A stretch of 64,000 bases of DNA, taken from assembly GCA_002269645.1 (NCBI GenBank), contig NIVC01003210.1, forward strand, positions 1 through 64,000, in the 5' to 3' direction. The notes under the pieces are model-generated. The model searched no databases. It had not been told where the DNA came from and saw only the letters and a list, made by a program, of their open reading frames with translations. Position numbers and translations under genes: made by a program. The stretch comes from Macrostomum lignano. Its lineage: Eukaryota. Every line of letters begins with the position of its first letter. Positions within the stretch are counted from its first letter, which is position 1. Shown here piece after piece: positions 3,601 through 55,548 of this stretch.

Positions 3601-4377
3601 AAAAATTATAATAGGGCGATGGTTTTGATATTGGGGCGATTCATATGATAATAGGGGACCCGGTGGTTCTTTGAAGGACACGGTGATTATTGCAAGGACA
3701 CGGCGATTCTTTTAAGGACAGGGCGATGCTTTCAAGAGAAGAGTGATTATTAAAAAAACACGCGATCATTTTGAGGTTTATAAAATTGGTTTAAAGACTT
3801 GTAAATAATTCCCAAGTCCAAATCTAAATCTATTTGCATTGCTTAGCACTGTGCAAAAAAGGATTCCGACAATCAAAGAAGGCAAGGCACTTTAAGCTGC
3901 CCAATAAAAAAATCTAAAGTATACTGCAGGCAGTTCGCTCCTGTTCTTTCCATTAAGAGCGGAAAAGGCAAGCTGCATCACGGGTGTTTGCTCAGCCTTC
4001 CTTGACTCCGAAAGGGGGCTGCCTGCGGATCCAGGCTACACAACAAATCTGTCAAATAAAAATGAGGGGTACAGGGTGGGAGAGAGGGCCAGCCAAGAAA
4101 GAGTTTTGAAGCTCGAATCGATTGAGGCTATGCAGCTAGCTGGTTGAGGGCTATAGGGAAAAGGGGAACGGTTTGCCCATGCTCTGAACTTGGCAGTCGG
4201 GAACATCGTTCAATAAAGTAGGCCGGTCCGCACTCGTAAAAGGATGGCTTAGAAGATAATCGGATATAGGAAATAATAACACCTGGGCAATTCTACTCAT
4301 TACTTGTTATAAAGAATAGGAAATAGATTTAATCTCGCATGAGATACATGCATAGAGGGGGGTTCTCTAAGTCAAAG

Positions 4378-4742
4378 ATTCTAAGAAATTGGTATCAGTG
4401 ACAGGGCGATTCTAAGAAATGGGTATGACAGGGCAATTCTAAGAAATTGGTATCAGTGACAGGGCGATTCTAAGAAATTGGTATCAGTGACAGGGCGATT
4501 CTAAGAAATCGGTATCAGTGACAGGGCGATTCTAAGAAATTGGTATCAGTGACAGGGCGATTCTAAGAAATTGGTATCAGTGACAGGGCGATTCTAAGAA
4601 ATCGGTATCAGTGACACGGCGATTCTAAGAAATTGGTATCAGTGACAGGGCGATTCTAAGAAATTGGTATCAGTGACAGGGCGATTCTAAGAAATCGGTA
4701 TCAGTGACACGGCCACTCTAAGAAATTGGTGTCAGTGACAGG
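4378..4742. repeat. 31-bp minisatellite (CTAAGAAATTGGTATCAGTGACAGGGCGATT)n
   Basis: About 11 tandem units. Contains the GGCGATTCT core. Confidence 0.95.
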
Positions 4743-5049
4743 GTTATACTTACACTCATACCTGAGAAACTAATAAGAGTCCGCTGTTGTTAGGCAAAAT
4801 TTATAGATTTCATCAGAGATAAAATATACTCATATAAGCAATACAGTTAGCATCGAACCAAATCTAACAGACTTGCAGCTGCCTATATTAGTCCCGTGGG
4901 AAATCAGACCAGATGGCCGTTTGTATATACCATCGTGCAGTCACAATGTGAAAGTTGTGAACTTCTCTGTTCAGAAAAATTTCTACAAATACTTACACGA
5001 CAAAAGTTGAAGATTCACTTTAAGCTTTTTTATAACTAAAAGGGAAAGA

Positions 5050-6562
5050 ATGGGCGATTCTAGATTGGAAGATGGGCGATTTTAGATTGGAGGATGGGCG
5101 ATTCTAGATTGGAGGATGGGCGATTCTAGATTGGAGAATGGGCGATTCTAGATTGGAGGATGGGCGATTCTAGATTGGAGGATGGGCGATTCTAGATTGG
5201 AGAATGGGCGATTCTAGATTGGAGGATGGGCGATTCTAGATTGGAGGATGGGCGATTCTAGATTGGAGGATGGGCGATTCTGGATTGGAGGATGGGCGAT
5301 TCTAGATTGGAGGATGGGCGATTCTAGATTGGAGGATGGGCGCTTCTGGATTGGAGAATGGGCGATTCTAGATTGGAGGATGGGCGATTCTAGATTGGAG
5401 CATGGGCGATTCTAGATTGGAGGATGGGCGCTTCTGGATTGGAGGATGGGCGATTCTAGATTGGAGGATGGGCGATTCTAGATTGGAGGATGGGCGATTC
5501 TAGATTGGAGCATGGGCGATTCTAGATTGGAGGATGGGCGCTTCTGGATTGGAGGATGGGCGATTCTAGATTGGAGGATGGGCGATTCTAGATTGGAGGA
5601 TGGGCGATTCTGGATTGGAGGATGGGCGATTCTAGATTGGAGGATGGGCGATTCTAGATTGGAGAATGGGCGATTCTAGATTGGAGGATGGGCGATTCTA
5701 GATTGGAGAATGGGCGATTCTAGATTGGAGCATGGGCGATTCTAGATTGGAGAATGGGCGATTCTAGATTGGAGAATGGGCGATTCTAGATTGGAGCATG
5801 GGCGATTCTAGATTGGAGAATGGGCGATTCTAGATTGAAGAATGGGCGATTCTAGATTGGAGGATGGGCGATTCTAGATTGGAGGATGGGCGATTCTGGA
5901 TTGGAGGATGGGCGATTCTAGATTGGAGGATGGGCGATTCTAGATTGGAGAATGGGCGATTCTAGATTGGAGGATGGGCGATTCTAGATTGGAGGATGGG
6001 CGATTCTAGATTGGAGGATGGGCGATTCTAGATTGGAGGATGGGCGATTCTAGATTGAAGAATGGGCGATTCTAGATTGGAGCATGGGCGATTCTGGATT
6101 GGAGAATGGGCGATTCTAGATTGGAGAATGGGCGATTCTAGATTGGAGCATGGGCGATTCTAGATTGGAGGATGGGCGCTTCTGGATTGGAGGATGGGCG
6201 ATTCTAGATTGGAGGATGGGCGATTCTAGATTGGAGGATGGGCGATTCTAGATTGGAGGATGGGCGATTCTAGATTGGAGGATGGGCGATTCTAGATTGG
6301 AGGATGGGCGATTCTAGATTGGAGGATGGGCGATTCTAGATTGGAGGATGGGCGATTCTAGATTGGAGGATGGGCGATTCTAGATTGGAGGATGGGCGAT
6401 TCTAGATTGGAGGATGGGCGATTCTGGATTGGAGGATGGGCGATTCTAGATTGGAGGATGGGCGATTCTAGATTGGAGGATGGGCGATTCTAGATTGGAG
6501 GATGGGCGATTCTAGATTGGAGGATGGGCGATTCTAGATTAAAAGAATGGGCGATTCTAGTT
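5050..6562. repeat. 22-bp minisatellite (GGCGATTCTAGATTGGAGGATG)n
   Basis: Long homogeneous tandem array. Contains the GGCGATTCT core. Confidence 0.97.
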
Positions 6563-7067
6563 TAAATTCTAGAAAATGTCTGCATGCATTATTAATAGCA
6601 AAATTGTTACAGCATATTTATTCGTCATTAACTTACTGTAAAGTGAAGATCAAGTTAATGGAACTACTTATATTTATAAATTGTACACAGATTAATTATA
6701 TCTATAGATTTATACACAAGAATTGGGTTACCAACAGTCTGTCCGATGGGATGACACTCGAAAAGATGGGGAAGAGAGAGGATATTTTTATAAACGCTTT
6801 GAGTTTGCCAGAAGCTTCACAGAGAGGACAGGCGGATACTGCAGGGAGGTCAGACTTACTAAACAGAAACCATTGGACGCCTCGAATAGACCACTGCTTG
6901 ATTGGCCGCGAATATTCATCATAGATTCTGGTGGGGTTAAGATTGGAAATTCTCTATTCTTGTATAAAAATTAAGAAATAGAATGCAAGAAATGCTAATA
7001 TATCTGAGAAAGTATGAATCTGCAATAATATTGACAGTGGAATCTGTCAAACTCTGAAGCGTTCGTT

Positions 7068-7181
7068 AGTTTTTTTAATAAAAGCAACTCTGTTTGAATA
7101 GAAATAAAAGGGTAAGTTACTGTCGTTAGTTTTTTTAATAAAAGCAACTCTGTTTGAATAGAAATAAAAGGGTAAGTTACT
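7068..7181. repeat. 60-bp-period exact tandem duplication
   Basis: CGTTAGTTTTTTTAATAAAAGC...GGTAAGTTACT occurs twice in succession. Confidence 0.85.
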
Positions 7182-7291
7182 TCCTTACCATGGTTGTACG
7201 TAGTTATACTACTTATAGGGGTGAAGGCGGGATATTCGTGTAGAGTATAGGTCGACGACTCGCAAATGAAAAACCTTTTGGTTCCAATGAT

Positions 7292-9497
7292 CCTTCAACT
7301 GTGGTCTGCAATAGACCCCCGCTGATACTTCAACTGTGGTCTGCAATAACCACCCGCTGATAGTTCAACTGTGGGCTGCAATAAATCCCCGCTGATAGCT
7401 GATACTTCAACTGTGGTCTGAAATAACCCCCCGCTGATAGCTGATACTTCAACTGTGGTCTGAAATAAACCCCCGCTGATACTTCAACTGTGGTCTGCAA
7501 TAACCCCCCGCTGATAGTTCAACTGTGGGCTGCAATAAACCCCCGCTGATACTTCAACTGTGGGCTGCAATAAACCCCCGCGGATACTTAACTGTGGTCT
7601 GCAATAAATCCCCGCTGATACTTCAACTGTGGTCTGAAATAACCCCCCGCTGATAGCTGATACTTCAACTGTGGTCTGAAATAAACCCCCGCTGATACTT
7701 CAACTGTGGTCTGCAATAACCCCCCGCTGATAGCTGATACTTCAACTGTGGTCTGAAATAAACCCCCGCTGATAGCTGATACTGTGGTCTGCAATAACCC
7801 CCCGCTGATAGCTGATACTGTGGTCTGCAATAACCCCCCGCTGATAGCTGATACTGTGGTCTGCAATAACCCCCCGCTGATAGCTGATACTTCAACTGTG
7901 GGCTGCAATAAACCCCCGCTGATACTTCAACTGTGGTCTGCAATAACCACCCGCTGATAGTTCAACTGTGGGCTGCAATAAACCCCCGCTGATACTTCAA
8001 CTGTTGTCTGCAATAACCACCCGCTGATAGTTCAACTGTGGGCTGCAATAAACCCCCGCTGATACTTCAACTGTGGGCTGCAATAAACCCCCGCTGATAC
8101 TTCAACTGTGGTCTGAAATAACCCCCCGCTGATAGCTGATACTTCAACTGTGGTCTGAAATAAACCCCCGCTGATACTTCAACTGTGGTCTGCAATAACC
8201 CCCCGCTGATAGTTCAACTGTGGGCTGCAATAAACCCCCGCTGATACTTCAACTGTGGGCTGCAATAAACCCCCGCGGATACTTCAACTGTGGTCTGCAA
8301 TAAATCCCCGCTGATACTTCAACTGTGGTCTGAAATAACCCCCCGCTGATAGCTGATACTTCAACTGTGGTCTGAAATAACCCCCCGCTGATACTTCAAC
8401 TGTGGTCTGCAATAACCCCCCGCTGATAGCTGATACTTCAACTGTGGTCTGAAATAAACCCCCGCTGATAGCTGATACTGTGGTCTGCAATAACCCCCCG
8501 CTGATAGCTGATACTGTGGTCTGCAATAACCCCCGCTGATAGCTGATACTTCAACTGTGGGCTGCAATAAACCCCCGCTGATACTTCAACTGTGGTCTGC
8601 AATAACCACCCGCTGATAGTTCAACTGTGGGCTGCAATAAACCCCCGCTGATACTTCAACTGTTGTCTGCAATAACCACCCGCTGATAGTTCAACTGTGG
8701 GCTGCAATAAACCCCCGCTGATACTTCAACTGTGGGCTGCAATAAACCCCCGCTGATACTTCAACTGTGGTCTGAAATAACCCCCCGCTGATAGCTGATA
8801 CTTCAACTGTGGTCTGAAATAAACCCCCGCTGATACTTCAACTGTGGTCTGCAATAACCCCCCGCTGATAGTTCAACTGTGGGCTGCAATAAACCCCCGC
8901 TGATACTTCAACTGTGGGCTGCAATAAACCCCCGCTGATACTTCAACTGTGGTCTGCAATAACCACCCGCTGATAGTTCAACTGTGGGCTGCAATAAACC
9001 CCCGCTGATACTTCAACTGTGGTCTGCAATAACCACCCGCTGATACTTCAACTGTGGGCTGCAATAAACCCCCGCTGATACTTCAACTGTGGGCTGCAAT
9101 AAACACCCGCTGATAGTTCAACTGTGGGCTGCAATAAACCCCCGCTGATAGTTCAACTGTGGGCTGCAATAAACACCCGCTGATAGTTCAACTGTGGGCT
9201 GCAATAAACCCCCGCTGATAGTTCAATTGTGGGCTGCAATAAACCACCGCTGATAGCTGATACTTCAACTGTGGGCTGCAATAAACACCCGCTGATAGTT
9301 CAACTGTGGGCTGCAATAAACCCCCGCTGATAGTTCAACTGTGGGCTGCAATAAACACCCGCTGATAGTTCAACTGTGGGCTGCAATAAACCACCGCTGA
9401 TAGCTGATACTTCAACTGTGGGCTGCAATAAACACCCGCTGATAGTTCAACTGTGGGCTGCAATAACCCCCCGCTGATACTTTAACTGTGGGCTGCC
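7292..9497. repeat. about 35-bp minisatellite (CTTCAACTGTGGGCTGCAATAAACCCCCGCTGATA)n with 34-42 bp variants
   Basis: Tandem units with or without an extra GCTGATA. Rare variants recur 659-695 bp apart (CGGAT at 7581/8276, CTGTTG at 8001/8660). Confidence 0.95.
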
Positions 9498-10914
9498 AGC
9501 TACAGTTATGAGCTACAGTATATGAGCTAACGTTATGATAAGCATAATAAAAGACAATGATACATTTATCCATCTTGGAAAATTACCAGATTCTTAAACT
9601 TTGCGTTACAAGATGTACTTACGCAATCGACCGACTGTACAGAGCATCGGATCCGAGCATGTCTTGTCCAAGGTACAAGTGAAGGTCACTCAAACGGACG
9701 GTGATAAATACTAGGATTAGAAATCAACTAATAATTAATTGCGTAATTCTGACTGAAAGGTGAGAGAAATCGTTCTTATATACAATACATGATGCAGATA
9801 GCGAGAAAATAATGTTTTTCACTTACCTTTGTAACAAATGGGTTCACACAAACAGCCATTGCTTTAGCCACAAATTTTCTTTGCAAGAGCACAATTTCTT
9901 TGTCTTTTTATCGCTTTTTACAGCACAAAGTCCATAGCATGACAGATGTACGCTCGTACAATAAAGATTATCTATGCAGATTTTCTAAGTTAAGCTGTAA
10001 GTAAGTAGTGAAGTTAAAATTTAAGAGTAATTAATTAGTCACACGAAATTGAATCCAGACACTTTAACGTCAGTAACGTTACGCTACGCTACTCACGCAT
10101 ACATGAAGTGTAACAAACAGCGTACGGCGAAAATTTTTATTTGGTAGCTTAGTACTTTGCGACGGGCAATGTAAATCTATTAACACATTCGCAGTGTCCT
10201 CCACCGCTTCGTTATTTCTATTCTGCCTGCGCTTAATTTTTAGGGGCCTTGTCTTCTCAGTTTCTTTTAGACTAGGACTAATTTTAAATTCCAAGGCAGC
10301 CCCCCAAACAAGTCTGGGCGCTCGTTAAAAACAAAGTGGAGCGAGCGAGGGGTGGACGAAAAGACCACTTCGGATTCACACGGCCAAGTTGGAGGACCTT
10401 TTTATTGCCCCTGGCATGGCACCCACCCACCGTTACCACCATAAAGAATGAGCCCATGGCCAATGTACAGTCAGTCTACGGCCAATTAAACAAATGTACA
10501 CTTAAGTCACGTGACAGTCGGCCCGGCCTCAGTTCCTAATGCCACTTGCCCCCACTGCACAGAACAGACCTCAACCTCGTGCATTCAACTTTATACGAGC
10601 ACGTATAAAATAAGATACAAGACTGAGGCTGAGGGAGTCAGTCCAGGAGGTTGACTGATCCCCCCTCGGAGAAAAATACAACTATCAAAATTAAAGTCAT
10701 AAAAAACAAAGAATTGCACGGAGTGCCAATTACCATTAGGCATTAGGTACCATATTGGGAGCGACTAACCGGCTGTCAACGGGGCGCCATAACTTGTAGC
10801 TCGTAGCTACACATTCATGCTCTATACGCTTACGAGAGATAACGCCCGTTTTGTTTAGGTGTACAGCGGCACTGACTTCCTATCGTCATCGTCAGGCATG
10901 CAAAAAAAGGTTAA

Positions 10915-13976: not shown

Positions 13977-16900
13977 CTAGGCAAACAAATGGCCCTGGTT
14001 AAAAAAGCTAAGCTTAGTCCAAACAATATCGCCATTGAACCTAGCCAGTCGAGCAGTGCTCAGAGAGGCAAAACTGCCGCCAAGTGTCGGCACGTAGCCT
14101 CTGCTAGTAAAAAAATTCATCATAAAAACCTGCTCATCGCGCGACATATGCCGCCTAAGCCATTCCATCTGCACTACAGGTATAGAAAAGTTATCAAAAA
14201 GTTGGTAGGAAGTTTTCAAAAAATCTGCTTCTCCACCTTCGATGTCGATCTTCATGATTAGGGTAGAGCCTGGGTCAAGGATGCGGGCCAATGCGTTGCC
14301 AGAGCTGGACATCACGGGGATCGTGTCCGCTACCGCCCGAGAGAATTTCGTGGCTCCTCCGACGTTACAATCGACAGGAAAGTTCAGATAGGAGAGTGAC
14401 ACCCGGCTGCTGATGAAATTCCACACTAGATGGGAGCGGATCTGAAAAGGTTGGGGTTGAAACAGCTAAACTTCTCAGCAAGCTTCACGCATCAGGTACA
14501 TCAGTTTCACACCCCATTTAGATCATTTTCACACCTCATTTAGATCATTTTCACACCTCATTTAGATCATTTTCACACCTCATTTAGATCAGTTTCACAC
14601 CTCATTTAGATCAGTTTCACACCTCATTTAGATCATTTTCACACCTCATTTAGATCATTTTCACACCTCATTTAGATCATTTTCACACCTCATTTAGATC
14701 ATTTTCACACCTCATTTAGATCATTTTCACAACTCATTTAGATCATTTTCACACCTCATTTAGATCATTTTCACACCTCATTTAGATCATTTTCACACCT
14801 CATTTAGATCATTTTCACAACTCATTTAGATCATTTTCACAACTCATTTAGATCATTTTCACACCTCATTTAGATCATTTTCACACCTCATTTAGATTAG
14901 TTTCACACCTCATTTAGATCATTTTCACACCTCATTTAGATCTTTTTCACAACTCTGTATAGATCATTTTTCACAATTTAGTATAAATCATTTTCACAGC
15001 TTTTATTTTCAGACTTTATACAGATCATTTTCACACCTCATACAGATCTCATACATCTTATATTCACACCTCAGTGACTGTCACTCACCGCAGTTGTTAT
15101 ATCGCTAGCACTCTTATTCAGACGATTTCTAGTCATCAAAGCTTCGGCCGAGAGCCGGATGCGTAGCAGGTTTCGAATATTGGCATCTAGCGACACCACA
15201 GGTACTCCCAAGTCCATGGCCGCCAAGGAGAAGACGCCGATATTTGATCCGACATCGACAAAGGTGACGCCGTTTGGCGCGACGCCTCTGTCAGATTTAA
15301 TCCGACGCAATAAACCAATTAAAGCGGCTACATTGTTAGTCTCGAAGCCCGTGCGCTTGCGAATCTCGTCGGATATATAGTCGCGTTCGGAATAGATGTA
15401 GCATGGCAGGCTGCGGCCTGTCACAGGGCTGGGCAAGCTGGCCAACTGGCTGCGAGAGCGGACCTGATGTTTATTTGGGGATCAAGTTACGCAACTGTCA
15501 GTCTCCAAGCTGGAAGTAGTAAAGATGGTGTATCACGTACAAACCAATCTGGGAGGGCTGCAGGTGGCTCAGCAACTGAGGATCTGGGAGGCTGGTAGCC
15601 CAGCAACTGAGGATCTGGGAGGCTGGTAGCCCAGCAACTGAGGATCTGGGAGGCTGGTAGCCCAGCAACTGAGGATCTGGGAGGCTGGTAGCCCAGCAAC
15701 TGAGGATCTGGGAGGCTGGTAGCCCAGCAACTGAGGATCTGGGAGGCTGGTAGCCCAGCAACTGAGGATCTGGGAGGCTGGTAGCCCAGCAACTGAGGAT
15801 CTGGGAGGCTGGTAGCCCAGCAACTGAGGATCTGGGAATCTGGCCCGGCAACTGAGGATCTGGGAGGCTAGCCCAGCAACTGAGGATCTGGGAGGCTGGC
15901 ACAGCAAACGATGATCAGAGAGGCTGGCCCAGCAACTGGGGATCTGGGAGACTGGCTCAGCAACTGAGGATCTGGGAGACTGGCCCAGCAACTGATGATC
16001 TGGGAGGCTAGTTCGGCAACTGAGGATCTGGGAGGCTAGCCCAGCAACTAGGGGATCCGAAAGAACTGAGGAATAAAATGGCAAACGGCTCACCTGATCC
16101 ATAATCTCGTCTGGCAGCCGGTCCCGCAGACGGCACAGCGGGAAGCTGCCATTGACGATGGCGTAAGCAGCGGTGCCGGAGCAGATCCTGTCCCGAATCG
16201 AGTCGCTGAGAAAGTTGATGTTGCGCAACTCATCGTAGGCTTTGCAGCTCGCCGCTGCCTCGACGTTGGATCTGTATGATATTAAAATTAACGGAAGCAT
16301 CAACTTTTATTAGTGACAATAAAAATGTTACGCAATAAATTTTCTAGTGGAATACTCAGTCAGATGAGTTCCGCAAATCTTTAACTAACCCATTCCGGAC
16401 ATTTCCACAGCTTAAAACTACTACCAGTAGTGTAAAAGCAAATTGCATTGCGCTGAACTACGCCCAACTATACATTATCTAGAAACGAATATAGCTCTAG
16501 AAGGAAACATTACAGGACACCTTATTTTTACTAGGCTAGGGGGAGAGAAGGCAGCTGAAACGACATTTTAGCATGTCAGGAGGCGTCATGCACAACCATT
16601 GGTTTATTATTTTTTTTATTAGAGGCAGGGGGGTTGTGTGCACCCTGGCGCACTTTAAGCGACATAGGCACACAACCGGCGAGAGGAGTGCTGCCCATTC
16701 CGCCGACTCCCCTGAGCAGGCATACAAGCGCGCGGATACGTACGCAGGCACACACTCACACAGGAGTGTACAGCGGCCCTAACTTTATTTATCGTTAGGC
16801 ATGTACACTTCACTGTGCCTTGGGGGGTTGGCTCTCAAGGCCGTTAATTGCCAAATTAATGTGACTGCACTTGGAATCGAGCCTGGGTCGCTGGCACACC

Positions 16901-17414
16901 AGAGTAGCTGCGCTACCGCTGGGCTACGGCCCCCCTTACAACCATTGGTTGGATTCCACGTGTAGCATACATTCACTTGGGGCTTGTAGATAGCCAGTAG
17001 GTTGTTGTACGATTCACAGTCATGAGGGTCAACCTCCAAAGGCACATAGAGCGTACATGCCAGACGATTAGAAAGTCATGGGCTACTGTACACCCTGAGA
17101 GCATGTGTATGAATGCTTGTCTGAGCACAGTATTGGAACGGTTGTAAATGGAATAATATAGGGTCTGGGTCATAGACTAAAATATTTTCATTCAAATTTG
17201 CAAAATGAAATAAAAAACAATTTAACAATAAATACCCTGGTAACACCTACTTGCTACTGTCAGCTGGAAAAATCCACGACTTGTGTGAAAACTCCACTTG
17301 ATCTATGCCAAGATAGATTGAATTTGACCCAAAGAAGGCAACAAATAAGGCAACCGTTAGCAATAGCAAGCAGAGAAATAATGGTATTATTTTGCGGTAG
17401 AATATCAATGGCAT
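13977..17414 (-). CDS. type II membrane FkbM-family (Methyltransf_21-like) SAM-dependent methyltransferase, 4 exons, about 393 aa
   Basis: Exons 17414-17251, 16271-16094, 15463-15089, 14441-13977. GT-AG sites have matching phases (2, 0, 0) and the total is 1182 nt. Exon 1 gives MPLIFYRKIIPLFLCLLLLTVALFVAFFG (signal anchor). FkbM motifs: FVDVGSNIGVFSL, NVGG, MKIDIEGGE, VQMEW. Confidence 0.88.
14500..15058. repeat. 22-bp intronic minisatellite (CATTTAGATCATTTTCACACCT)n
   Basis: Fills most of intron 3 of the methyltransferase gene. Confidence 0.95.
15545..16045. repeat. 31-bp intronic minisatellite (GCCCAGCAACTGAGGATCTGGGAGGCTGGTA)n
   Basis: Lies between the donor GTGAGC (16093) and the acceptor (15464) of methyltransferase intron 2. 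Confidence 0.93.
16603..16935 (-). mobile_element. tRNA-derived SINE family A, copy 1
   Basis: Inverted homologue of 51185-51570. The head has A-box-like and B-box-like (GGCTCGATTCC) motifs, and there is an A-rich tail. Confidence 0.82.
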
Positions 17415-18525
17415 GTTTCTGTGACGGTGTTTATATATAAATGTAAATCTGAAATGTCAAAAATGGAAGAATTATTGAAATACTATTTAAAAATATTTGA
17501 ATTAGAAATACTGTCACAGGAAAATTTTTTATTGAACAGTGCAAGTCTCGTGAAAATCAGTCAAGCCATTCTTTCAAAAATCAATTTCATATGGAAGGAT
17601 GGATAGACAACTCATTTTATTATATAAGAGAAAACAAAATTGATGTATAAACTATATATAATGCTCATTATATAATGATCTGGGGTCTAGAGACCCTGGG
17701 GTTGGGGACTTAAACAATCAGACTTTTGATGCTACATACACATTGTGGTTGGGTAGTAAGGGCTAATGTTAAGGTGAATGTTTTCACTTTCAATGCAAGG
17801 GGAACCTCTTAAGTCCATAGAATCAAGGACTCAAGCAACAAACAAAAGTTTGACACTTTATGCATGTTGGGGTTGAAATCAAGAGGGGCTGAAGTTAAGA
17901 TAAATGTTTTCACTTTCAATACAAGGAGAGTTCTTAAGTCTCTAGGCTCTGGGCTCAGTCTCCAGGGGCTTCAGGCTTAACATTTTTTACACTATAATGC
18001 ACATTGTGGTTCAGGACCATAAAAAATGCTAGATTGCAAAGAAGGCTTCTAAGAAACCAACTGATGAGTAGCCCATTGCTCTTAGTAGAAGATCTCAATA
18101 AGAATTAGACATTTGATTACTTTACTTTGCTACTTTAGAACAAATCCTGCAGCTGCTGTCTTGCAACTCTGTGCTTGATCAGCTCTACTTGTGGCTTTCT
18201 TCTGAGGGAGCATAGAAGCACTATGCAGTATGTATTTCTATGGCCAATGATATGCAAACAAATGCATGCTGCTTACAGCAAGAAGCACTTATAAAAATTG
18301 GACTTTCGTAGCATGAAAGCTAAAATAAGCTGCTAACTTTTAAAGCATATGATTTTTTAACATATTAATACTTGTAGAAGCAAGCAACAGTGACACTACT
18401 TCTGGGCCACCCTTCGTATAATAGCCAATAGCAAGAGGTCTAATGCCTAATGCCAAACATTTCAACTATAGCAAGAAATTTATACAAAGTTACAGAAAGT
18501 TTATTAGCTATAGATATGGTTATGG

Positions 18526-21500
18526 CACGGTGCTACCATAGGCAGAAAATTGCTTAAAAAATTCACCGGAAAAGTTATTTGTCACAATTGACAATCGAGT
18601 TATTAAGGATTCCATGGAAGAAAAAATTAAAATTGTACTCGTTTGTTTTAGCTCAAAAAAACAATTTTCTGTTTTTTACCATAGATTATATTGGAAATTT
18701 ACTGCATTGTAATTGAATTCTTTCAAATTGTTGTCAATATGCGTATTAAAGAAGAGTTATTACAATTTAAATCGAAACAAATTCACAATTTTTTTCAGCA
18801 AGTCCATGAATATTGTATTGTATGCACATTTTAAATCTACTCGAAGCTTAGCACACTGTCTTACATGAAGCAAAACAACTCAAAGCAGCATGGTGCTGCG
18901 GCGTTTCACAAACCCCAAATTTTATAACATAAATTTTTTTTTATATTCTTTCACCTTAATATCTAACCTCAAACCATGTGAATATGTTCTTGATGCTATG
19001 AAATTTTGGGTTTGTGAAAGCACCCCTATCATACAAGGTTTTGTATTACCTTACAATTCAAATTAGAATCGTTACAATTGCAATTTAATATATAGACTTC
19101 AAAGGGGACATTTATCGGGTTGATTTTCCTGGAGGCTTTGACTACAATAACTGAGTGGGTCGAAAAATTGTGCTACTAAATTTTCTGACTTCATAACTGT
19201 CCAATACTTGCGTTGCAGTTCAACTGTTGCAGTTCCGGATTCGCACTTTCCACAAAACGCTCACAAATGGCGACTGTTGTAACACCGCACAGCTGCCAGG
19301 AGCCTTTCAGCGAAGAGAGGATGCGTGCTCGCCACCTTGTATCTCTCCCAATACAGGAGGAAGTCTCTGTGCATCGACTCCATGCATTGTTCGCTCCATG
19401 GCCCCAGGCCTGTTTTGTCCTTGGCGCGGCAGAAGTCACTGACGTGGTGGAAAATCGCGTGGATTTTTGGACTGATGGAAATGCCGAGATCGGCATAACT
19501 GGTGCAAAATTCCTGAATCGCCTGCTCGAAATTGGGACGCAGCTCACTCCCGAAGCATGACACCACGACCGAGTTCAACGCTCGAAGGGCGGCAACAAAC
19601 GGCAGCGCTGCCATCGGGCACATCGCTTCTAGCAGGTCCACGTTGCGCAGCAACTTGCGGCTCGCATTGCCAGTGAAGCTGCCACCGTGATGCTTGTCAC
19701 ATTGGACATTGCAAGCTGTAAGCCAAGCTTCACCATGCAGACCCTCGTACAGCACATGGACCGCACTGGTCAGTAGGTGCAGCTCCGGTGGAGGGACAAT
19801 GTGCAACACCGGGACTTCAACTCCAGCGGAAAAGATGCTGGGCTGGACGACATTATCGAAGTGCTTAGCTAGTTGGCGTTCACCACCAGCAGCCAGGTAG
19901 GCCTGGTATTTCTCACTGAGGCTGCCAAAGGTCCTTGGCTCGCCGCAGCTGTCAAGGCTCCCTTTATTAACGTTGCACCAGGTGCAGGCATGCGAGCTGC
20001 TGTGGGCCATCAAGCCGAGAAGGATGTTGGCAAGCTTCAGGTCACACGCGATGCTGATGTTCGCCGACAGAAGCTGCAGGCGGCAGCTCTCCCAGAGACA
20101 CTCCAGGTTCCTGTGGTTCTCCTGCGTGTTGGGAGCGATGCCAAGGATGACGGCCCGATGCACGCCAGTGTCGAGGAATCGGCGATCAGCCCCCTTCTGC
20201 TGCTCCTCACCAGCACACACGCACAGGTCAAAAACGGATATCGAGAGCTTCAAGAACCCACCTCCACCATCGATTCCAATTCTGACGACTGTGGAAGCAA
20301 CATCCATCAGCCGGCGGTTTGCAATCATGCGGCCCAGGAGCTCGACCACATCAGTGCAGACAACGGCCCACTGCTCAGCTGGAGTCTGCCTTCCCCTCTC
20401 TTCTCGGATAAACGCCAGCTGCTTCGCTTGGAAGAGGTCATCCAGTTCGTGATCCATCTCCCTCAATGTCTGCCGGATGTTGCTCTGGACAGCTGAGGCG
20501 CCAATCGAAGACCGAAGATTTCGAAGTACAACCTCCGTTTTGCGCGAACTGAGGCCCAGCTCACCTTGCAGATGACGCATATTATCCGCCGTGAAGACCG
20601 CTGTTGGCTTCGGAGGCGGCGGATTCACGGCCAGCCTCATTGAGGGTCCAGCGTTGGATGCCAGCACGGTGATGCCCGAGGCTGTGTCTCCGGAGCCTGA
20701 AGTAATAAGTTTCTGCCGCACAATTGTTGTGGCGAGCCGCTCTGGGAATTCCGGGGACGCTTCCTGCAACAGGGCATGCGCATTCTGCAGTCTTGTGGGT
20801 CTGTTGCATGTGTGCGGCTTGCCCCTGCCAATAGGACTGATGCAGAAGGAGCAGACCTTGACCATTTCGGGCTTGGGCGTTGTAGCCTCGTCCGCCGTCA
20901 AACTCGGCCGCCCAACAGACCGCTTTGGGACGTTGGCTTCTGGAGGATGGACTCTGCATCTGGCAGTGCTGCAGATCTTACAGTCGCATCCATCTTGGCC
21001 CACTGATCGGGTCACCGGCAGTGGCTGCACGTCCCTGAAGTCATACATCGGTGGCACATCAGCCCGTTGGCCCTTCTCCAGCTGCTGCAGAGCGAATCTG
21101 CACGTGCCACAAATTGCCTTGGGAACGCGATTATCGTGCAGATCGTAGAGCCAGCCACTGTGCCGATTGATGATGGCCAGCATCCAGGGCGTAACGGATC
21201 GCAACTCTTTTGCCTTCAAAAAGCACAAAATGCAGATCCGATTGAGGCAATCTTCGTGTGATAGTGGCATGACAAAAACTGTGTACACGCAAGCACAATC
21301 GTTGCAACTAAATGTTTCGATGAAACACTTTTAGACAGAGTTGGTTAGACAGACTTTTAGACAGAGACAAACCTCCTCAAACGGGACCTCCTTACTTTTA
21401 AGGTTTGACGTTTATATTGATGAAAAACATAAATGAGCACGATGGCATTACAAGACTGAGGGTGGTTCGGCGAGTGCTTGGTGCAAAGAGCACACACCAA

Positions 21501-22138: not shown

Positions 22139-22884
22139 GATATAGATAAAATTTGGTTATAGCAAAACTCTATTAGAGTTCTTATTCACAATATTTTTGG
22201 CTTTTATTAAATCTATAAATAGACACTTATTAAATGAAAACTTACAAAAGTAAATAGTTTTATAAAAAACAACTTAGCATCCTATATACTAAAAATGAAA
22301 ATCTTGCTTGCTTGCTTGCTTGTAATCGATTAGAGAAAAAATGGCTTAACCGATTTTCATGAGACTTGCACTGTTCGATCAGAAATTTTCCCGTGACGGT
22401 ACATGCATCTTGGCTAAGAAATTACTCCATGTTAAAGCGATTAAATATTCGAAAAACATGCTTTTTTGCAAAGTTCAAGCAAACTTTTCGACTTGAAATG
22501 CATTGTAAGAATGCTAGAGAAAAAACTGACTGGTTAAATTCTGATTCTGAAATAGATTGCATCATAACTGAATTGTAACTCCGACTTGAATTGCGTCACA
22601 GTATTGAAAATGCAGTGTGGAAGCATAGCACCAGACTTGATTTAGATTGCGTAACCATATTGTTAACTGATACTGACTGACTGAGAAATTGATTATGTCA
22701 TAACTGCCTTGTGTGATTTACTCTATGCTTGGAGTTTTGAAACTTATAATTATAGAAGTGCTAAAATTCATGTTATCAAAACGATGAGAGCTAGCCTAGA
22801 CTGCTAAATGCAGGGACGATGGTTTGAATTTTTAGAGAGTGGAGTTTTTTTAATTAAAGTTTTTTTACACCAAGAAAACTAAAA

Positions 22885-25800
22885 AATCATAGAAGCGTCA
22901 TGTAAAAAAATCATAGAAGCGTCATCTAAAAAGTCATAGAAGCGTCATGAAAAAATCATGGAAGCGTCATGTAAACAATCATAGAAGCATCATGTAAAAA
23001 ATCATAGAAGCATCATGTAAACAATCATAGAAGCGTCATCTAAAAAATCATAGAAGCGTCATGTAAAAATCATAGAATCGTCATATAAAAGCATAGAAGC
23101 GTCATATAAACAATCATAGAAGCGTCATGTAAAAAATCATAGAAGCGTCATGTAAACAATCATAGAAGCGTCATATAAAAAGCATAGAAGCGTCATGAAA
23201 AAATCATAGAAGTGTCATGTAAACAATCATAGAAGCGTCATGTAAAAAAATCATAGAAGCGTCATGTAAAAAATCATGGAAGCGTCATATAAACAATCAT
23301 AGAAGTGTCATATAAAAAAGCATAGAAGCGTCATGAAAAAATCATAGGAGCGTCCTGCAGAAATTGTAGAAGCGTCATGAAATAATCATAGAAGCGTCAT
23401 GTAAAAAGCATAGAAGCGTCATGTAAACAATCATAGAAGCGTCATATTAAAAACCATAGAAGCGTCATATAAACAATCATAGAAGCGTCATGTAAACAAT
23501 CATAGAAGCGTCATGTAAAAAATCGAAGAAGCGTCATATAAAAAGCATAGAAGCGTCATATAAACAATCATAGAAGCGTCATGTAAAAAATCATAGGAGC
23601 GTCATGAAAAAATCATAGAAGCGTCATGTAAACAATCATAGAAGCGTCATGTAAAAAATCATAGGAGCGTCATGAAAAAATCATAGAAGCGTCATGTAAA
23701 AATCATGGAAGCGTCATGTAAAAAATCATAGAAGCATCATGTAAAAATCATAGTAGCATCATGTAAAAAATCATAGAAGCGTCATGTAAAAATCATAGAA
23801 GCGTCATATAAACAATCATAGAAGCGTCATATAAACAATCATAGAAGCGTCATGTAAAAAGCATAGAAGCGTCATGTAAAAAGCATAGAAGCGTCATGTA
23901 GACAATCATAGAAGCGTCAAGTAAAAAATCATAGAAGCGTCATGTAAAAATCATAGAAGCGTCATGTAAACAATCATAGAAGCGTCATGTAAACAATCAT
24001 GGAAGCGTCATATAAAAAAATCATAGAAGCGTCATGTAAAAAGCATAGAAGCGTCATATAAACAATCATAGAAGCATTATATAAAAAATCATAGAAGCAT
24101 CATGTGAAAATCTTAGAAGCGTCATGAAAAAATCAGAAGCATCATGTAAAAATCTTAGAAGCGTCATGTAAAAATCATAGAATCGTCATATAAAAGCATA
24201 GAAGCGTCATATAAACAATCATAGAAGCGTCATGTAAAAAATCATAGAAGCGTCATGTAAACAATCATAGAAGCGTCATATAAAAAGCATAGAAGCGTCA
24301 TGAAAAAATCATAGAAGTGTCATGTAAACAATCATAGAAGCGTAATGTAAAAAAATCATAGAAGCGTCATGTAAAAAATCATGGAAGCGTCATATAAACA
24401 ATCATAGAAGTGTCATATAAAAAAGCATAGAAGCGTCATGAAAAAATCATAGGAGCGTCCTGCAGAAATTGTAGAAGCGTCATGAAATAATCATAGAAGC
24501 GTCATGTAAAAAGCATAGAAGCGTCATGTAAACAATCATAGAAGCGTCATATTAAAAACCATAGAAGCGTCATATAAACAATCATAGAAGCGTCATGTAA
24601 ACAATCATAGAAGCGTCATGTAAAAAATCGAAGAAGCGTCATATAAAAAGCATAGAAGCGTCATATAAACAATCATAGAAGCGTCATGTAAAAAATCATA
24701 GGAGCGTCATGAAAAAATCATAGAAGCGTCATGTAAACAATCATAGAAGCGTCATGTAAAAAATCATAGGAGCGTCATGAAAAAATCATAGAAGCGTCAT
24801 GTAAAAATCATGGAAGCGTCATGTAAAAAATCATAGAAGCATCATGTAAAAATCATAGTAGCATCATGTAAAAAATCATAGAAGCGTCATGTAAAAATCA
24901 TAGTAGCATCATGTAAAAAGCATAGAAGCGTCATGTAAAAAGCATAGAAGCGTCATGTAGACAATCATAGAAGCGTCAAGTAAAAAATCATAGAAGCGTC
25001 ATGTAAAAATCATAGAAGCGTCATGTAAACAATCATAGAAGCGTCATGTAAACAATCATGGAAGCGTCATATAAAAAAATCATAGAAGCGTCATGTAAAA
25101 AGCATAGAAGCGTCATATAAACAATCATAGAAGCATTATATAAAAAATCATAGAAGCATCATGTGAAAATCTTAGAAGCGTCATGAAAAAATCAGAAGCA
25201 TCATGTAAAAATCTTAGAAGCGTCATGTAAAAATCATAGAATCGTCATATAAAAGCATAGAAGCGTCATATAAACAATCATAGAAGCGTCATGTAAAAAA
25301 TCATAGAAGCGTCATGTAAACAATCATAGAAGCGTCATATAAAAAGCATAGAAGCGTCATGAAAAAATCATAGAAGTGTCATGTAAACAATCATAGAAGC
25401 GTAATGTAAAAAAATCATAGAAGCGTCATGTAAAAAATCATGGAAGCGTCATATAAACAATCATAGAAGTGTCATATAAAAAAGCATAGAAGCGTCATGA
25501 AAAAATCATAGGAGCGTCCTGCAGAAATTGTAGAAGCGTCATGAAATAATCATAGAAGCGTCATGTAAAAAGCATAGAAGCGTCATGTAAACAATCATAG
25601 AAGCGTCATATTAAAAACCATAGAAGCGTCATATAAACAATCATAGAAGCGTCATGTAAACAATCATAGAAGCGTCATGTAAAAAATCGAAGAAGCGTCA
25701 TATAAAAAGCATAGAAGCGTCATATAAACAATCATAGAAGCGTCATGTAAAAAATCATAGGAGCGTCATGAAAAAATCATAGAAGCGTCATGTAAAAAAT

Positions 25801-26320
25801 CATAGGAGCGTCATGAAAAAATCATAGAAGCGTCATGTAAAAATCATGGAAGCGTCATGTAAAAAATCATAGAAGCATCATGTAAAAATCATAGTAGCAT
25901 CATGTAAAAAATCATAGAAGCGTCATGTAAAAATCATAGAAGCGTCATATAAACAATCATAGAAGCGTCATATAAACAATCATAGAAGCGTCATGTAAAA
26001 AGCATAGAAGCGTCATGTAAAAAGCATAGAAGCGTCATGTAGACAATCATAGAAGCGTCAAGTAAAAAATCATAGAAGCGTCATGTAAAAATCATAGAAG
26101 CGTCATGTAAACAATCATAGAAGCGTCATGTAAACAATCATGGAAGCGTCATATAAAAAAATCATAGAAGCGTCATGTAAAAAGCATAGAAGCGTCATAT
26201 AAACAATCATAGAAGCATTATATAAAAAATCATAGAAGCATCATGTGAAAATCTTAGAAGCGTCATGAAAAAATCAGAAGCATCATGTAAAAATCTTAGA
26301 AGCGTCATGAAAAAATCATA
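22885..26320. repeat. about 23-bp satellite (AATCATAGAAGCGTCATGTAAAA)n with a 1.06-1.1 kb higher-order repeat
   Basis: The unique variant GGAGCGTCCTGCAGAAATTG has its CTGCAG at 23355, 24460 and 25519, and the surrounding variant order is also repeated. Confidence 0.95.
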
Positions 26321-27230
26321 GAAGCCTAATTTAAAAACTAATGAAAGTGTCATTTAAAAAATTAAGAAGCATCATGGTAGAATAAAAGAAGCGTCATGTC
26401 AGACATGAAGGGTGTCATGTAAAAATTAAATGCAGCTATAATGCTGTGCTGGGGTGAAAAACTGAGACGTAAAGGCTCTCAGAGAATAACTGAGATTACG
26501 GGGGGGGGGTTTCTGAGATGTCAAAGCAAAAGTCAGAAGCTACTTCAAAGTTCATGTACTTTACTCAATTTTTTTATTGCATTCTTTGTTGGCTCGCCAC
26601 GGGGGGCGCTGATAGAAGAAGAGTCATGTAAAAAATAAAAGTAGCACTAAGTATACATAAAAGAAAAGTCATGTCGAAGTTAAAAGATTCATTTGGGAAT
26701 GGCTACGATGTCAAAGCTTGGTGGAAATCGTTATAGTGCTGTGATTCTTAAAGAAGGAATCACTAAAATGTCAAGGCTTAGGGGAGAAGAATTTCTGAGA
26801 TTTCAAGGCTTTAGGTTCGGTTAAAGTTAGTTTTTAGGTCAGGTGTGGGTTGAGGGTTAGATTTTATCAGGTTTCAAGGTTAACAGGGGATTTTTTAGAT
26901 TTCAAGGTTTATGGGGGCCATCGCTGACATGTCAAGGCTTACGGGGGGAATAGCTGAGATGTCAAGGCTCACGGGGTATAAATGAAATTTCAAGGCTAAA
27001 GCCAGAAGCTACATGTAGTTTATTGAAAACTTTTTATTACATTATTTGATGCCTCCTCAGGGGAGGGATCGCTGATAAAAAAGCGTAATGTAAAAAATAA
27101 AAGAAGCTTCATGTCGAAGTTAAGAGATTCATTTGGGAATCCCTACGATGTCGAGGCTTGCAGGGAATTGCTATAATGCTGTAGTAGTGCTATAATGACT
27201 CTTAAAGAGAATTACTAAAATTTTAATGCT

Positions 27231-27298
27231 TTAGGGTTAGGTTACGGTTAGGGTTAGGGTTAGGGTTAGGGTTAGGGTTAGGCTAGGGTTAGGGTTAG
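27231..27298 (+). repeat. interstitial telomeric repeat (TTAGGG)n
   Basis: About 10 perfect or near-perfect TTAGGG units. Confidence 0.85.
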
Positions 27299-43045: not shown

Positions 43046-45311
43046 ATGACAGATCTGGCCTCGATTAGTCCACTGGAAGCCTCTGGAGCCACCGGACAGT
43101 CTGGTGCTAGCGGAGAGCAGCAGCAGCAACCGCAGCAACCGCAGCAGCAGCGGCGGCGGCGGCGGCAGCTGCAGAGAGCCCGGCCGAGGGCCACAACTCG
43201 ACTGCGCGCAAGCATCGCCCAGCAGTTGGATAACATTCGGCGAAGGTTTCAACTGCACAAGCTCTGGGACTCGATGCTGCGTAGTCTAGAAATATCCGCC
43301 GTTCTTCTGGTCCTCCTGTGCCTGCTCACCGTTCTCATTGCCGTTGTGTTCTACTATGTCAACAGGAACGGACACACCGACAGTGAGCGGTACAAGCTAT
43401 TGAAGGCCAGAGAGGCTGAGTACAATCGCTCGCTGGCTGAGGTTGTTCAGATGTCCGGCAAAGCAGATTTGAATAAAACTCTGCTAGCCGAGAAGCTGAG
43501 TCGACTCAGACAGCTAGGCAGGTGAGCTCGTATAGTCATGTGCGTTAAGTAAGGGTTTAACTTTGGTATGCCGCCTAGTTTTGTTCGAATAGCGCCTGGG
43601 CTGTTCGGGTAGCAATGGCAATATCGTTTTCTATGAAGCGCCGGTTGAACGTTTAGATAAATTACAACTCTGCAGTGCACTATGACGAGCTTTGAAGAAG
43701 CCATAAGCTTTCAAAATAGCCAAACTCCTCTAACTACATGTACAGTAGTGCTGAGCTCGTGGCAGGGCCACAATCCCCTCCCCCCTACGAACTCTAGAAT
43801 TGAAACTAGAAATGAAGCGCCCAATTTTTCTATATATTATTATTTATCTTGGAGGGTTTACTTGTAAAATTGAATATTTGTAGTAAAAAACCCTCTTAAA
43901 CTACGGCCTAGGGTTGTAGCAAAGTGGTCAGAGCGTCGGACTTGCGACTTCAAGGTTGGGGGTTCGATTCTCGACGGCCACTCGGTACAATTTGTGTCCT
44001 TGAGCAAGACACTTAACTCTGCATTGCTTCAGTTCACCCAGCTGTAAAATGGGTGCCAGCATTAGCTGGGGTATGAGGCTGTGTGTGGCGACCCACCAGT
44101 CCTTGGACTGAACAGCCGTAAGCAGCCTTCAGATGCGCCGCGCAATAGCTGCGGCTGAGCTGTCGGTTGCACATCTGGCCCAATTGGGGCAGGTGTAATC
44201 AATTATTGTGCATTATTATTATAGCTTTTGTCATGCTATCTCAGCCTAGGGACATCCAAACTCAGCCAGCCCCAACTCAGCAATGCGTTTTTTGGCTCGA
44301 GCTAGTCGAGTTTTACCATAGACATGCTTCTTGGGGCCATGCTATCTCAGCCTGGGACATGCAATCTCAGCCAATATAGATTTCAATTGCAAACAGATCT
44401 CAATGCTATCATTTCTATAACGTGACATGAAATGGCAACAAACAGCAATGAATGAACGCAGCAAGAAAAGTCAGTAAGAATCTGAAAAGTGGCTGAGATT
44501 GCATGTCCCAGGCTGAGATAGCATGGCCTTAAGAAGCATGTCTATGGTAAAACTTGACTGGCTTACGTAAAAAATCGCACTGTTGAGATGGGCTGGCTGA
44601 GTTTGGATGTCTCTAGGCTGAGATAGCATGACAAATACTATACTTGTAAATATTAATAATATCCCAAACGCAACGTGTAGAAACCTGGTCTACAAGGACA
44701 TAAAAAACGCGATCAAACAGCACGAGCTGAGGCCGACCTTCACCCAGTCGATGTACTACGCCGTCACCCTGGTGTCGCTCATTGGCTATGGGGACATTGC
44801 TGGCGCCTCCGAACTGCAGTACTTCTGCGCCAGCCTGTGCATGCTAATTGTGGTTCCGGTATGGTACATGTACCACCACCAGCTCTATCATTTGTTTTAC
44901 TTTTTCCAGCTCTACTGCTATCGCCGTTGGGTGCACAGGCAGCAGGTGGAGAGCCGGTCAAACAGAACCATGATGGTGCTATGGGCTGTCAGAATACGCA
45001 ACGCGGATGTGTACAGAAGGTCCCGATTCTACCTGAGCAATCTGGTGCTGATGATTGTGATTTTCCCCGTCTGTTGGGCCGTGTTTTCCTTTAGCGAAAG
45101 GCAGCTGGCTCTGAAGGACCAGCTGTGGCTCATTGTGCAGTCAATATTTCACATTGGCCTGGGAGATGTGCCACCACAGGCGGCCAACTGGCCCGTGATA
45201 TTTCTGATGATCAGTACCTGCTTTCTCATCTACTTCCAGTGCTTTGCGTTCATTGTGCCGCAGTATCCCTCTATGAGGCTGGCCAGGATCTTGCAGAATC
45301 ACTACAGCTGA
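43046..45311 (+). CDS. two-pore-domain potassium channel (K2P/KCNK-like), divergent, 2 exons, about 368 aa
   Basis: Exons 43046-43521 and 44681-45311 (phase 2; AG|A = Arg). Layout: TM1, cap helix, P1 SLIGYGD, TM2, TM3, P2 FHIGLGD, TM4. Confidence 0.85.
43911..44207 (+). mobile_element. tRNA-derived CORE-type SINE family B, copy 1 (K2P intron)
   Basis: A box, B box GGTTCGATTC, and the central TGTGTCCTTGAGCAAGACACTTAAC...CAGCTGTAAAATGGG resembling the MIR/CORE domain. Confidence 0.85.
44227..44635. mobile_element. foldback MITE with about 150-bp inverted arms (K2P intron)
   Basis: TTTGTCATGCTATCTCAGCCTAG.../...CTAGGCTGAGATAGCATGACAAA. Each arm has an internal duplicated CATGCTATCTCAGCC. Confidence 0.85.
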
Positions 45312-53818: not shown

Positions 53819-54339
53819 GTAGGGCCGCTAACATTTGCGTCATTCTTTTGTTCATGTATTAACTATGTGTATAACAGTAATTTGTTTAACATAAGTTGTC
53901 ATAAATTTCGATCTAAAAATTCATAGCGCCTGTAATACACGTTTAAATAAATTACCAATACCGCATGTAAATTATCAGCTTCTTTTGCTCGCATTCTAGT
54001 ACTCTCGACAGCAAGTTCAGTCAATAGACCAGTCTCATATAAACACAAATAACTTTCATTGTGTACTCGTATTAAAAATTTTCTTACTGTTTTTGTAATC
54101 TTTTCATTACCAATAAAAGCACGCAAGTCAAGCATATCATGTCAAGCAGAGAGTTAAAATGTAACATGCAGATTGGCTTTATGTATTGCAAATAGCTATG
54201 TCAATTCTGTTTATTCTCAAGCTCGGAAAAAACGACACAGATATGTGCAGAGACGCGCACTCAGTGATCTTGTATAAAAGGTCAAAAACTTTTTTACCTC
54301 AAGGGTTAGATACAGAACCTAGCGCATGAAGGCCAGATG

Positions 54340-55320: not shown

Positions 55321-55548
55321 AGTCCTGGGGTTTGGCCCTCATGCAGCAACACGAAAATCTCTTGACACAATTTTTTTTGTGAGCGAGCCCCTTGCAATAC
55401 TTTTGGCGAGTTTTGAGGTCAGAGCCGAACGTGCTTACCGTTCTCTGCTACTAACTACCTGCAGATACGCCAGCATTAGGTAAATAAAAATCAGTCAAAG
55501 TTAGAGATGCATGACATACATTGAATATGGCACATGTGTTCAACTCTG

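Follow-up and report, generated by a model that had tools for sequence, protein, structure and literature searches.

The FkbM family of methyltransferases (PF05050, Methyltransf_21; TIGR01444) is named for the Streptomyces 31-O-demethyl-FK506 O-methyltransferase, and its characterised members are soluble bacterial enzymes. Glycan O-methylation by bacterial enzymes is known from RfbT (WbeT) of Vibrio cholerae, which adds a methyl group to the terminal sugar of the O1 O-antigen, and from rhizobial NoeI, the Nod-factor fucose 2-O-methyltransferase. In plants, Golgi-resident type II polysaccharide methyltransferases of the QUA2/TSD2 (pectin) and GXMT (glucuronoxylan) types have cell-wall polysaccharides as acceptors, and plant Golgi methylation is said to depend on S-adenosylmethionine (SAM) imported by a Golgi SAM transporter. 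O-Methylated sugars are a hallmark of the glycans of molluscs, flatworms and nematodes; they block glycosidases and are targeted by fungal and animal defence lectins. The N-glycans of planarians are heavily O-methylated, glycan methylation is thought to be located in the Golgi and the methyltransferases involved are unidentified (PMC5936828, PMC7614267); among the Golgi candidates already reported for Caenorhabditis elegans are 'potential methyltransferases' of type II topology (PMC7614267). The subject of this study is a gene of the flatworm Macrostomum lignano that encodes a predicted type II membrane protein with an FkbM-type methyltransferase domain and lies on the minus strand, at positions 13977-17414, of a 64,000-nucleotide stretch of DNA (assembly GCA_002269645.1, contig NIVC01003210.1, positions 1 to 64,000), which is referred to throughout as the window.

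The flatworm protein resembles the FkbM family in its class I Rossmann fold, its DxGxNxG motif I and its KxDxEGxE motif, from which O-methylation chemistry would be expected. Beyond what the characterised members possess, it has a eukaryotic type II signal anchor, followed by a stem and by an N-terminal subdomain that contains cysteines and is specific to its clade, and it scores marginally against the FkbM profiles, which are weighted towards bacteria. The likeness to RfbT would lie in glycan O-methylation, and several of the flatworm protein's relatives score above the Pfam cutoff of the RfbT family of V. cholerae O-antigen proteins (PF05575); PF05575 gave no match to the flatworm protein itself at E <= 1. 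Both RfbT and NoeI differ from it in being bacterial and in lacking a eukaryotic secretory-pathway anchor. A 50-kb stretch of the NGR234 symbiotic plasmid was inspected for noeI and does not contain the gene. The best structural matches are FkbM proteins of giant viruses and phages in the BFVD collection of viral models, such as a Fadolivirus 'Methyltransferase FkbM' and a Megaviridae 'capsular polysaccharide synthesis protein', which differ in being viral, uncharacterised, without a type II anchor and only 12-18% identical in sequence. The plant QUA2/TSD2 and GXMT enzymes share with the flatworm protein a single N-terminal anchor, a luminal SAM-dependent domain and Golgi SAM import, the last two as predicted on the flatworm side, whereas their catalytic domain families are unrelated to it. 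Indeed, the flatworm protein falls outside the plant methyltransferase families because a Pfam scan at E <= 1 returned only PF05050 and a non-significant match to B12D. The proposed enzyme would have its place in a pathway of the kind described for C. elegans, in which glycan methylation depends on SAMT-1, a putative Golgi SAM transporter.

Glycan methylation by FkbM-type proteins has been suggested before for genes in bacterial flagellin glycosylation islands and in Ostreococcus, on the basis of gene neighbourhood only; in a cyanobacterial pilus cluster, an FkbM gene adjoins an O-GlcNAc transferase, again a matter of gene neighbourhood only. The chlorovirus rhamnose O-methyltransferases A064R-D3 and A061L were considered as precedents and dropped, a review describing them as class I SAM methyltransferases and not as FkbM proteins.

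Gene model, FkbM-type domain and signal anchor

Four minus-strand exons (17414-17251, 16271-16094, 15463-15089 and 14441-13977) join in phase to give 1182 nt encoding 393 residues, with a single terminal stop. All intron borders are canonical (GT...AG), the intron phases are 2/0/0 and a stop codon lies in frame upstream of the exon 1 ATG, just upstream of an acceptor AG. Exon 1 (164 nt) contains codons 1-54 and two bases of codon 55 and encodes the tail MPLIFYRK and the signal anchor before running on into the stem; by itself it forms a 55-residue ATG open reading frame (ORF) at 17247-17414 (minus strand), and it is absent from the ORF list of the window because 55 residues fall below the 60-residue default of that list. 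The N-terminal subdomain containing Cys64, Cys85 and Cys101, which is specific to the Macrostomum clade, is encoded by exon 2 (178 nt), the Rossmann core begins in exon 3 (375 nt), and exon 4 (465 nt including the TAG stop) provides the C-terminal half of the FkbM domain.

The 393-residue model is 100% identical, over 100% of its length, to the M. lignano GenBank protein BOX15_Mlig009692g2 (P0001), whose locus lies on contig NIVC01000199.1 of the same assembly. The annotation of M. lignano was built from RNA-seq and transcript assemblies alone (StringTie, TACO, TBONE, TransDecoder), mapped trans-splice sites serving to set the limits of genes (PMC5730564), and the breaks in the alignments with paralogs coincide with the exon borders of the model. 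The locus is a real, transcribed four-exon gene and not a chance construct. An earlier note on the window, made from its sequence, had placed the FkbM gene at 13977-17414 and its first exon at 17414-17251, all of which is correct, and its expectation that exon 1 is joined in transcripts as part of a four-exon mRNA is confirmed by the identity to the transcript-derived P0001. The gene is already public, as an uncharacterised 'hypothetical protein' or 'Methyltransf_21 domain-containing protein'.

Both signatures of the FkbM family are present. The SAM-binding motif I (DxGxNxG) is FVDVGSNIG, F182-G190 (15236-15262, minus strand), in which D184, G186 and G190 are invariant among 48 relatives compared and N188 is found in 44 of them; the second signature (KxDxEGxE) is KIDIEGGE, K303-E310 (14229-14252, minus strand), with K303 and E310 invariant and D305 and E307 kept in 47 and 46 relatives, respectively. 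Since every invariant and near-invariant position of the family is retained in the window protein, it is not pseudoenzyme-like. PF05050 is matched by 46 of the 48 relatives at E <= 0.001 (best E 2.6e-16), the score of the window protein being the weakest in the family. An AlphaFold2 model calculated from a 16-sequence alignment has a mean predicted local distance difference test score (pLDDT) of 84.4 and a predicted template-modelling score (pTM) of 0.81. When this model was compared with BFVD using Foldseek, the top matches were FkbM-family methyltransferases (E 6e-11 to 1e-8, target-normalised TM-score <= 0.81), some of which are FkbM domains within giant-virus proteins annotated as glycosyltransferases or as involved in capsular-polysaccharide synthesis. 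Against the PDB, Foldseek returned class I methyltransferases only, of a generic kind (METTL21D, PrmA, NNMT), and a search of PDB sequences with the family profile gave nothing significant (best E 0.19). The predicted fold is that of an FkbM-type class I SAM methyltransferase with intact motifs, an assignment that is marginal for the protein alone and firm at the level of the family.

The N-terminus consists of an eight-residue basic tail, MPLIFYRK (with R7 and K8), followed by an uncharged segment of 22 residues, 9-30 (IIPLFLCLLLLTVALFVAFFGS; 17325-17390, minus strand), which Kyte-Doolittle hydropathy and the flanking charges identify as a probable transmembrane signal anchor. Its best 19-residue window has a Kyte-Doolittle value of 2.96, and no second hydrophobic segment occurs in the 393-residue protein. 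The flanks carry charges of +3 on the N-terminal and -1 on the C-terminal side, so that by the positive-inside rule the N-terminus would be cytosolic and the remainder luminal (type II, N-in/C-out). The AlphaFold2 model contains a continuous helix at residues 4-29, a disordered stem at 31-56 (pLDDT < 50) and a single folded α/β domain spanning residues ~57-393. The earlier note had described a type II signal anchor in exon 1 followed by an FkbM methyltransferase domain; hydrophobicity, flank charge and the modelled helix all point to the former, and the latter agrees with the PF05050 match (marginal), both signature motifs and the fold matches.

This layout is widespread among the relatives. 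Among 140 full-length (Met-starting) top hits, 110 (~79%) carry such an anchor, mollusc and nemertean proteins included, with a median tail of nine residues and a median uncharged span of 20 residues; the N-terminal flank is the more positive in 99 of these 110 proteins, and at least two Lys or Arg residues lie within six residues of the membrane in 86. The paralogs P0004, P0005 and P0006, in which the anchor, the stem and the FkbM domain are encoded in single uninterrupted ORFs, are the strongest independent evidence for it; as these genes are intronless, the combination of anchor and FkbM domain does not depend on any splice call. A short basic tail preceding a span of ~20 residues is what textbooks describe for Golgi-resident type II enzymes, and the Golgi is the predicted compartment. 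C-terminal to the anchor there are three N-X-S/T sequons (N95, N230 and N323). Four cysteines, C64, C85, C101 and C264, are conserved within the Macrostomum clade only; the first three are kept in the four full-length M. lignano paralogs and fall in gaps in 42-43 of the 48 wider relatives. These three belong to a subdomain, residues ~57-115, that among the relatives compared is confined to the Macrostomum clade and is modelled with pLDDT values of 78-93.

Word-indexed homolog searches gave barely any match outside M. lignano, and the large family to which the protein belongs was revealed by an exhaustive profile search only, which returned 15,661 cluster representatives at E <= 1e-3 and 293 at E <= 1e-30. 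Because this search carries no names, the taxonomy of the relatives rests on look-ups of 30 top-ranked clusters, of which 12 could be named: eight mollusc species, two nemerteans (Tubulanus and Lineus), one ichthyosporean and M. lignano itself, all labelled uncharacterised. The molluscs comprise bivalves and gastropods (Mya, Argopecten, Haliotis, Gigantopelta, Ylistrum and Mytilus). No vertebrate, insect or nematode was found among these 12 named members of the 30 top clusters, nematodes being known methylators. Elsewhere among animals, amphioxus carries a PF05050 gene, and FkbM-domain genes have been mentioned in passing there and in a clam immune transcriptome.

A proposed role in glycan O-methylation and its alternatives

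We propose that the gene encodes a type II protein with an eight-residue basic cytosolic tail, one anchor helix, a flexible stem of ~25 residues and a catalytic domain of ~335 residues that would face the lumen. The anchor would retain the enzyme in the Golgi or secretory pathway, SAM would be imported by a SAMT-1-type transporter, and, as glycoproteins or glycolipids pass through, a hydroxyl on one of their glycan sugars would receive the methyl group. Taken as a whole, with the glycan acceptor included, this proposal of a lumen-facing FkbM O-methyltransferase acting on glycans has in our estimation about an even chance of being right. Its extension to the family, according to which the type II-anchored FkbM proteins that flatworms, molluscs and nemerteans possess in several copies would be the animal Golgi glycan O-methyltransferases, with paralogs responsible for sugar-specific or position-specific methylation, is put forward tentatively and is the more doubtful statement. 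What is new here is the recognition that spiralian animals share a conserved FkbM family, type II-anchored and probably facing the lumen, which is a candidate for the missing enzyme; this constitutes a testable hypothesis.

Gene context in prokaryotes is an indirect argument for a glycan acceptor. Two of the three prokaryotic relatives examined, P0014 and P0012, lie in polysaccharide gene clusters, where their neighbours encode GT2 and GT4 glycosyltransferases, a member of the Polysacc_synt family and sugar epimerases or dehydratases. The scores of some relatives above the PF05575 cutoff, the giant-virus proteins among the fold matches and the molluscs and nemerteans among the named relatives point the same way, again indirectly. 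The earlier note had stated that O-methylated sugars occur on planarian and nematode glycans and that the responsible enzymes are largely unassigned, in agreement with the literature (PMC5936828, PMC7614267), and 'elusive', the word it used for the animal glycan O-methyltransferases, is a fair one. Its inference that this protein methylates glycans in the secretory pathway is supported in part, by the fold, the family, the topology and the intact motifs. In the literature searched, no link was found between FkbM-domain proteins and animal glycans.

Several observations weigh against the proposal. The match of the protein to PF05050 is marginal, at 23.1 bits for a gathering cutoff of 22.7, and covers residues 298-356 only, while the TIGR01444 cutoff of 37.7 bits is not reached (25.6 bits; residues 181-316, model positions 1-126 of 143); by this criterion the protein is a divergent member, since the model was built on bacterial sequences and the score lies below its cutoff. 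Membership of the family, moreover, does not fix the substrate, because its name-giving enzyme, FkbM, methylates the hydroxyl of a macrolide and not a sugar. The third prokaryotic relative is not in a glycan cluster, and the genes flanking the methyltransferase in the window are unrelated (a cGMP-dependent-kinase-like gene and a transposon-like ORF), with no glyco-gene among these neighbours. Ten long eukaryotic relatives were scanned for fusion to a glycosyltransferase or lectin domain and none was found, tandem FkbM repeats being present instead; a single sub-threshold lectin-like match occurs in an ichthyosporean protein. A tail motif of the Vps74/GOLPH3 type, LIFYR, is present, and its enrichment in the family is weak (nine observed versus 4.6 expected, with 16 of 500 shuffles reaching nine); such tail motifs are not counted here as evidence of Golgi retention. 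The taxon sample is small, being the 12 named of 30 clusters and drawn from the top-ranked hits, and no M. lignano glycome was found in the literature searched. Acceptor, compartment and activity are all predictions drawn from the sequence, the structural model and gene context.

The main alternative retains the same protein and the same luminal topology and assigns to it a non-glycan acceptor, such as a small molecule, a lipid, a secondary metabolite or a protein side chain. It is a serious contender, albeit an unlikely one: the macrolide substrate of FkbM itself speaks for it, as do the functions of the PDB fold matches, which act on proteins, RNA and small molecules (METTL21D, PrmA, NNMT), and the eukaryotic members examined contain neither a glycosyltransferase fusion nor a glyco-gene neighbour. 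On the other hand, we know of no abundant luminal non-glycan methyl acceptor in animals, which counts against such a substrate. The location of the prokaryotic relatives mostly (two out of three) within polysaccharide clusters also favours a glycan, as do the giant-virus FkbM folds found inside proteins annotated as glycosyltransferase or capsular-polysaccharide proteins and the O-methylated glycans without an assigned enzyme that are documented in related phyla (PMC5936828, PMC7614267). The hydrophobic segment might also be a cleaved signal peptide, or an anchor for the endoplasmic reticulum (ER) and not the Golgi, in which case the enzyme would be secreted or ER-resident. The compartment is not readable from sequence, and the stems of type II proteins are often cleaved with release of soluble forms. 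The h-region of a cleavable signal peptide typically comprises 7-15 residues, however, and both the uncharged stretch of 22 residues and the 26-residue helix of the model are long for one; the residues at -3 and -1 before S30 are Phe and Gly, a poor cleavage site, the SAM cofactor is absent outside the cell, and the short basic tail with a span of ~20 residues, typical of Golgi residents, extends across the family. A secreted or ER-resident enzyme is accordingly regarded as improbable.

Single-pass N-terminal anchors also occur in proteins of the mitochondrial outer membrane, and an N-out orientation, or an anchor in the outer mitochondrial or peroxisomal membrane, would leave the catalytic domain in the cytosol with a cytosolic substrate. 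The charge difference (+3 versus -1) favours N-in here, as it does in 99 of the 110 anchored relatives; the four clade-conserved cysteines and the three N-X-S/T sequons all lie C-terminal to the anchor, and the tail has no amphipathic presequence character, which makes a cytosolic catalytic domain very improbable. We regard as equally remote the idea that the gene is a catalytically dead or decaying duplicate within an expanded family. The genome of M. lignano is recently polyploid and rich in redundant copies (PMC5730564), the gene contains minisatellite-filled introns, which it may have gained, along with a loop insertion of 13 residues, and its Pfam score is the weakest of the family; every invariant and near-invariant residue is nevertheless kept, the ORF is intact and transcribed, and two diverged genomic copies encode an identical protein (exons less diverged than non-coding bases, Fisher p = 0.07, suggestive only).

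If glycan O-methylation by this protein proves true, a gap in the invertebrate glycosylation pathway would be filled, and a handle on parasite and mollusc glyco-epitopes would be obtained; a refutation would instead imply an as yet unknown substrate for methylation in the lumen, an outcome of interest in its own right. Knockdown by RNA interference (RNAi) has reportedly been used in M. lignano, in one study. Transgenesis is possible as well (PMC5730564), so that with these two tools the glycan-methylation idea is directly testable in the animal itself.

Transcript 5' end, second genomic copy and introns

P0001 is flagged as 5'-partial, its coding sequence (CDS) beginning 11 codons upstream of the ATG, at 17447, one base past the AG at 17450-17449. 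This 3' splice acceptor AG (17449-17450, minus strand; ttttgacatttcag, with an a as the next base) is a probable spliced-leader trans-splice site, which would be the 5' end of the mature mRNA. The 5' untranslated region would then measure 34 nt (17415-17448, minus strand); no stop interrupts it in the frame of the ATG, and the transcript-derived ORF reads through it as FTFIYKHRHRN-M. The locus suffix 'g2' denotes the second gene cut from one transcriptional unit at mapped trans-splice sites (PMC5730564). As the CDS start adjoins a polypyrimidine-AG acceptor and the locus carries this suffix, the mRNA is probably trans-spliced to a spliced leader. The gene of the paralog P0004 has a ttttcag acceptor ~33 nt upstream of its ATG.

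The window represents a second genomic copy or haplotype of the P0001 locus: its identity with the GenBank contig is 98-99.8%, and most indels between the two fall in repeats. The exons map exactly onto that contig and both genomic copies encode an identical protein. Between the copies there is one difference in 1182 exon bases versus 12 in 2381 non-repeat non-coding bases (Fisher p = 0.07), a lower exon divergence that is only suggestive. The annotated CDS spans 3635 bp in the GenBank contig versus 3471 bp in the window, the extra length lying within the minisatellite parts of introns 2 and 3. Contamination and horizontal transfer were considered as origins of the gene and rejected in view of its spliceosomal introns, the 795-kb animal contig and the two diverged genomic copies.

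Intron 1 (16272-17250, 979 nt, phase 2, GT-AG) harbours at 16907-16931 (minus strand, reaching ~16860) a tRNA-like sequence with A-box and B-box-like motifs (GGCCGTAGCCCAGCGGTAGCGCAGC...GGCTCGATTCC), present as a single copy in the window, which is probably the head of a tRNA-derived short interspersed nuclear element; neither ARAGORN nor Rfam made a call on it. Intron 2 (15464-16093, 630 nt, phase 0) consists mostly of a 31-bp minisatellite (15563-16057, 16.7 copies), and intron 3 (14442-15088, 647 nt, phase 0) mostly of a 22-bp minisatellite (14500-14998, 22.5 copies); like the gene itself, all are read on the minus strand. Intron 3 sits within a gene-specific loop insertion of 13 residues (the MTRNRLNKSASDITTA region, residues ~227-242) that is missing from all paralogs and forms the sole low-confidence loop of the structural model (pLDDT ~59). 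This loop could be sequence exonised at the origin of the intron. Three M. lignano paralog genes that are 45-49% identical to the window gene (L008, 3001-4110; L009, 3001-4149; L010, 3001-4308) are intronless single ORFs, in contrast to its three introns, which reflects either intron gain in the window gene or the origin of the paralogs by retroposition.

Two further gene models of the family deserve mention. P0002, a 354-residue UniRef model from another M. lignano assembly, uses as its donor a GT inside exon 3 (15204-15205 in the window) and lacks V201-A239, an in-frame deletion that includes strand β2 and D207; P0002 represents a mis-model or else a minor isoform that is probably inactive. 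The paralog P0003 (BOX15_Mlig019506g3, 504 residues) contains an internal duplication of ~135 residues comprising the stem-proximal region and motif I, which is either a real partial tandem duplication or an artefact of assembly or annotation.

Neighbouring sequence in the window

Upstream of the methyltransferase gene by 1.8 kb, and on the same strand, an ORF of 675 uninterrupted residues (19261-21288, minus strand) has a cysteine-rich, zinc-finger-like N-terminus; it has no Pfam match and no GenBank gene annotation, and looks transposon-derived. The downstream neighbour (~3871-9660, minus strand) is a gene with cyclic-nucleotide-binding and protein-kinase domains that resembles cGMP-dependent kinases, and its region contains a long tandem array (~7288-9496) that appears as many offset BLAST alignments in steps of ~35 bp. 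The segment 22281-27521 is missing from the GenBank contig and contains a 3.5-kb satellite of ~156 copies of a 23-bp unit (22880-26399) and an interstitial (TTAGGG)n tract that resembles telomeric repeats (27231-27298, 11.7 copies).

Farther from the gene, an ORF at 62776-63312 (minus strand) scores 22.7 bits against PF04488 (Gly_transf_sug, the DXD-motif glycosyltransferase region), for which the cutoff is 23; with this borderline match it may represent a further gene for glycosylation, ~45 kb away from the methyltransferase. The ORF at 44628-45311 (plus strand), with a match to Ion_trans_2 (E 9e-11), probably belongs as an exon to a gene for a two-pore-domain potassium channel. A stretch of strong strand composition bias extends over 54001-56000 (GC skew 0.55, AT skew 0.41), and a low-complexity ORF (54299-55342) with a sub-threshold extensin-like match overlaps it.

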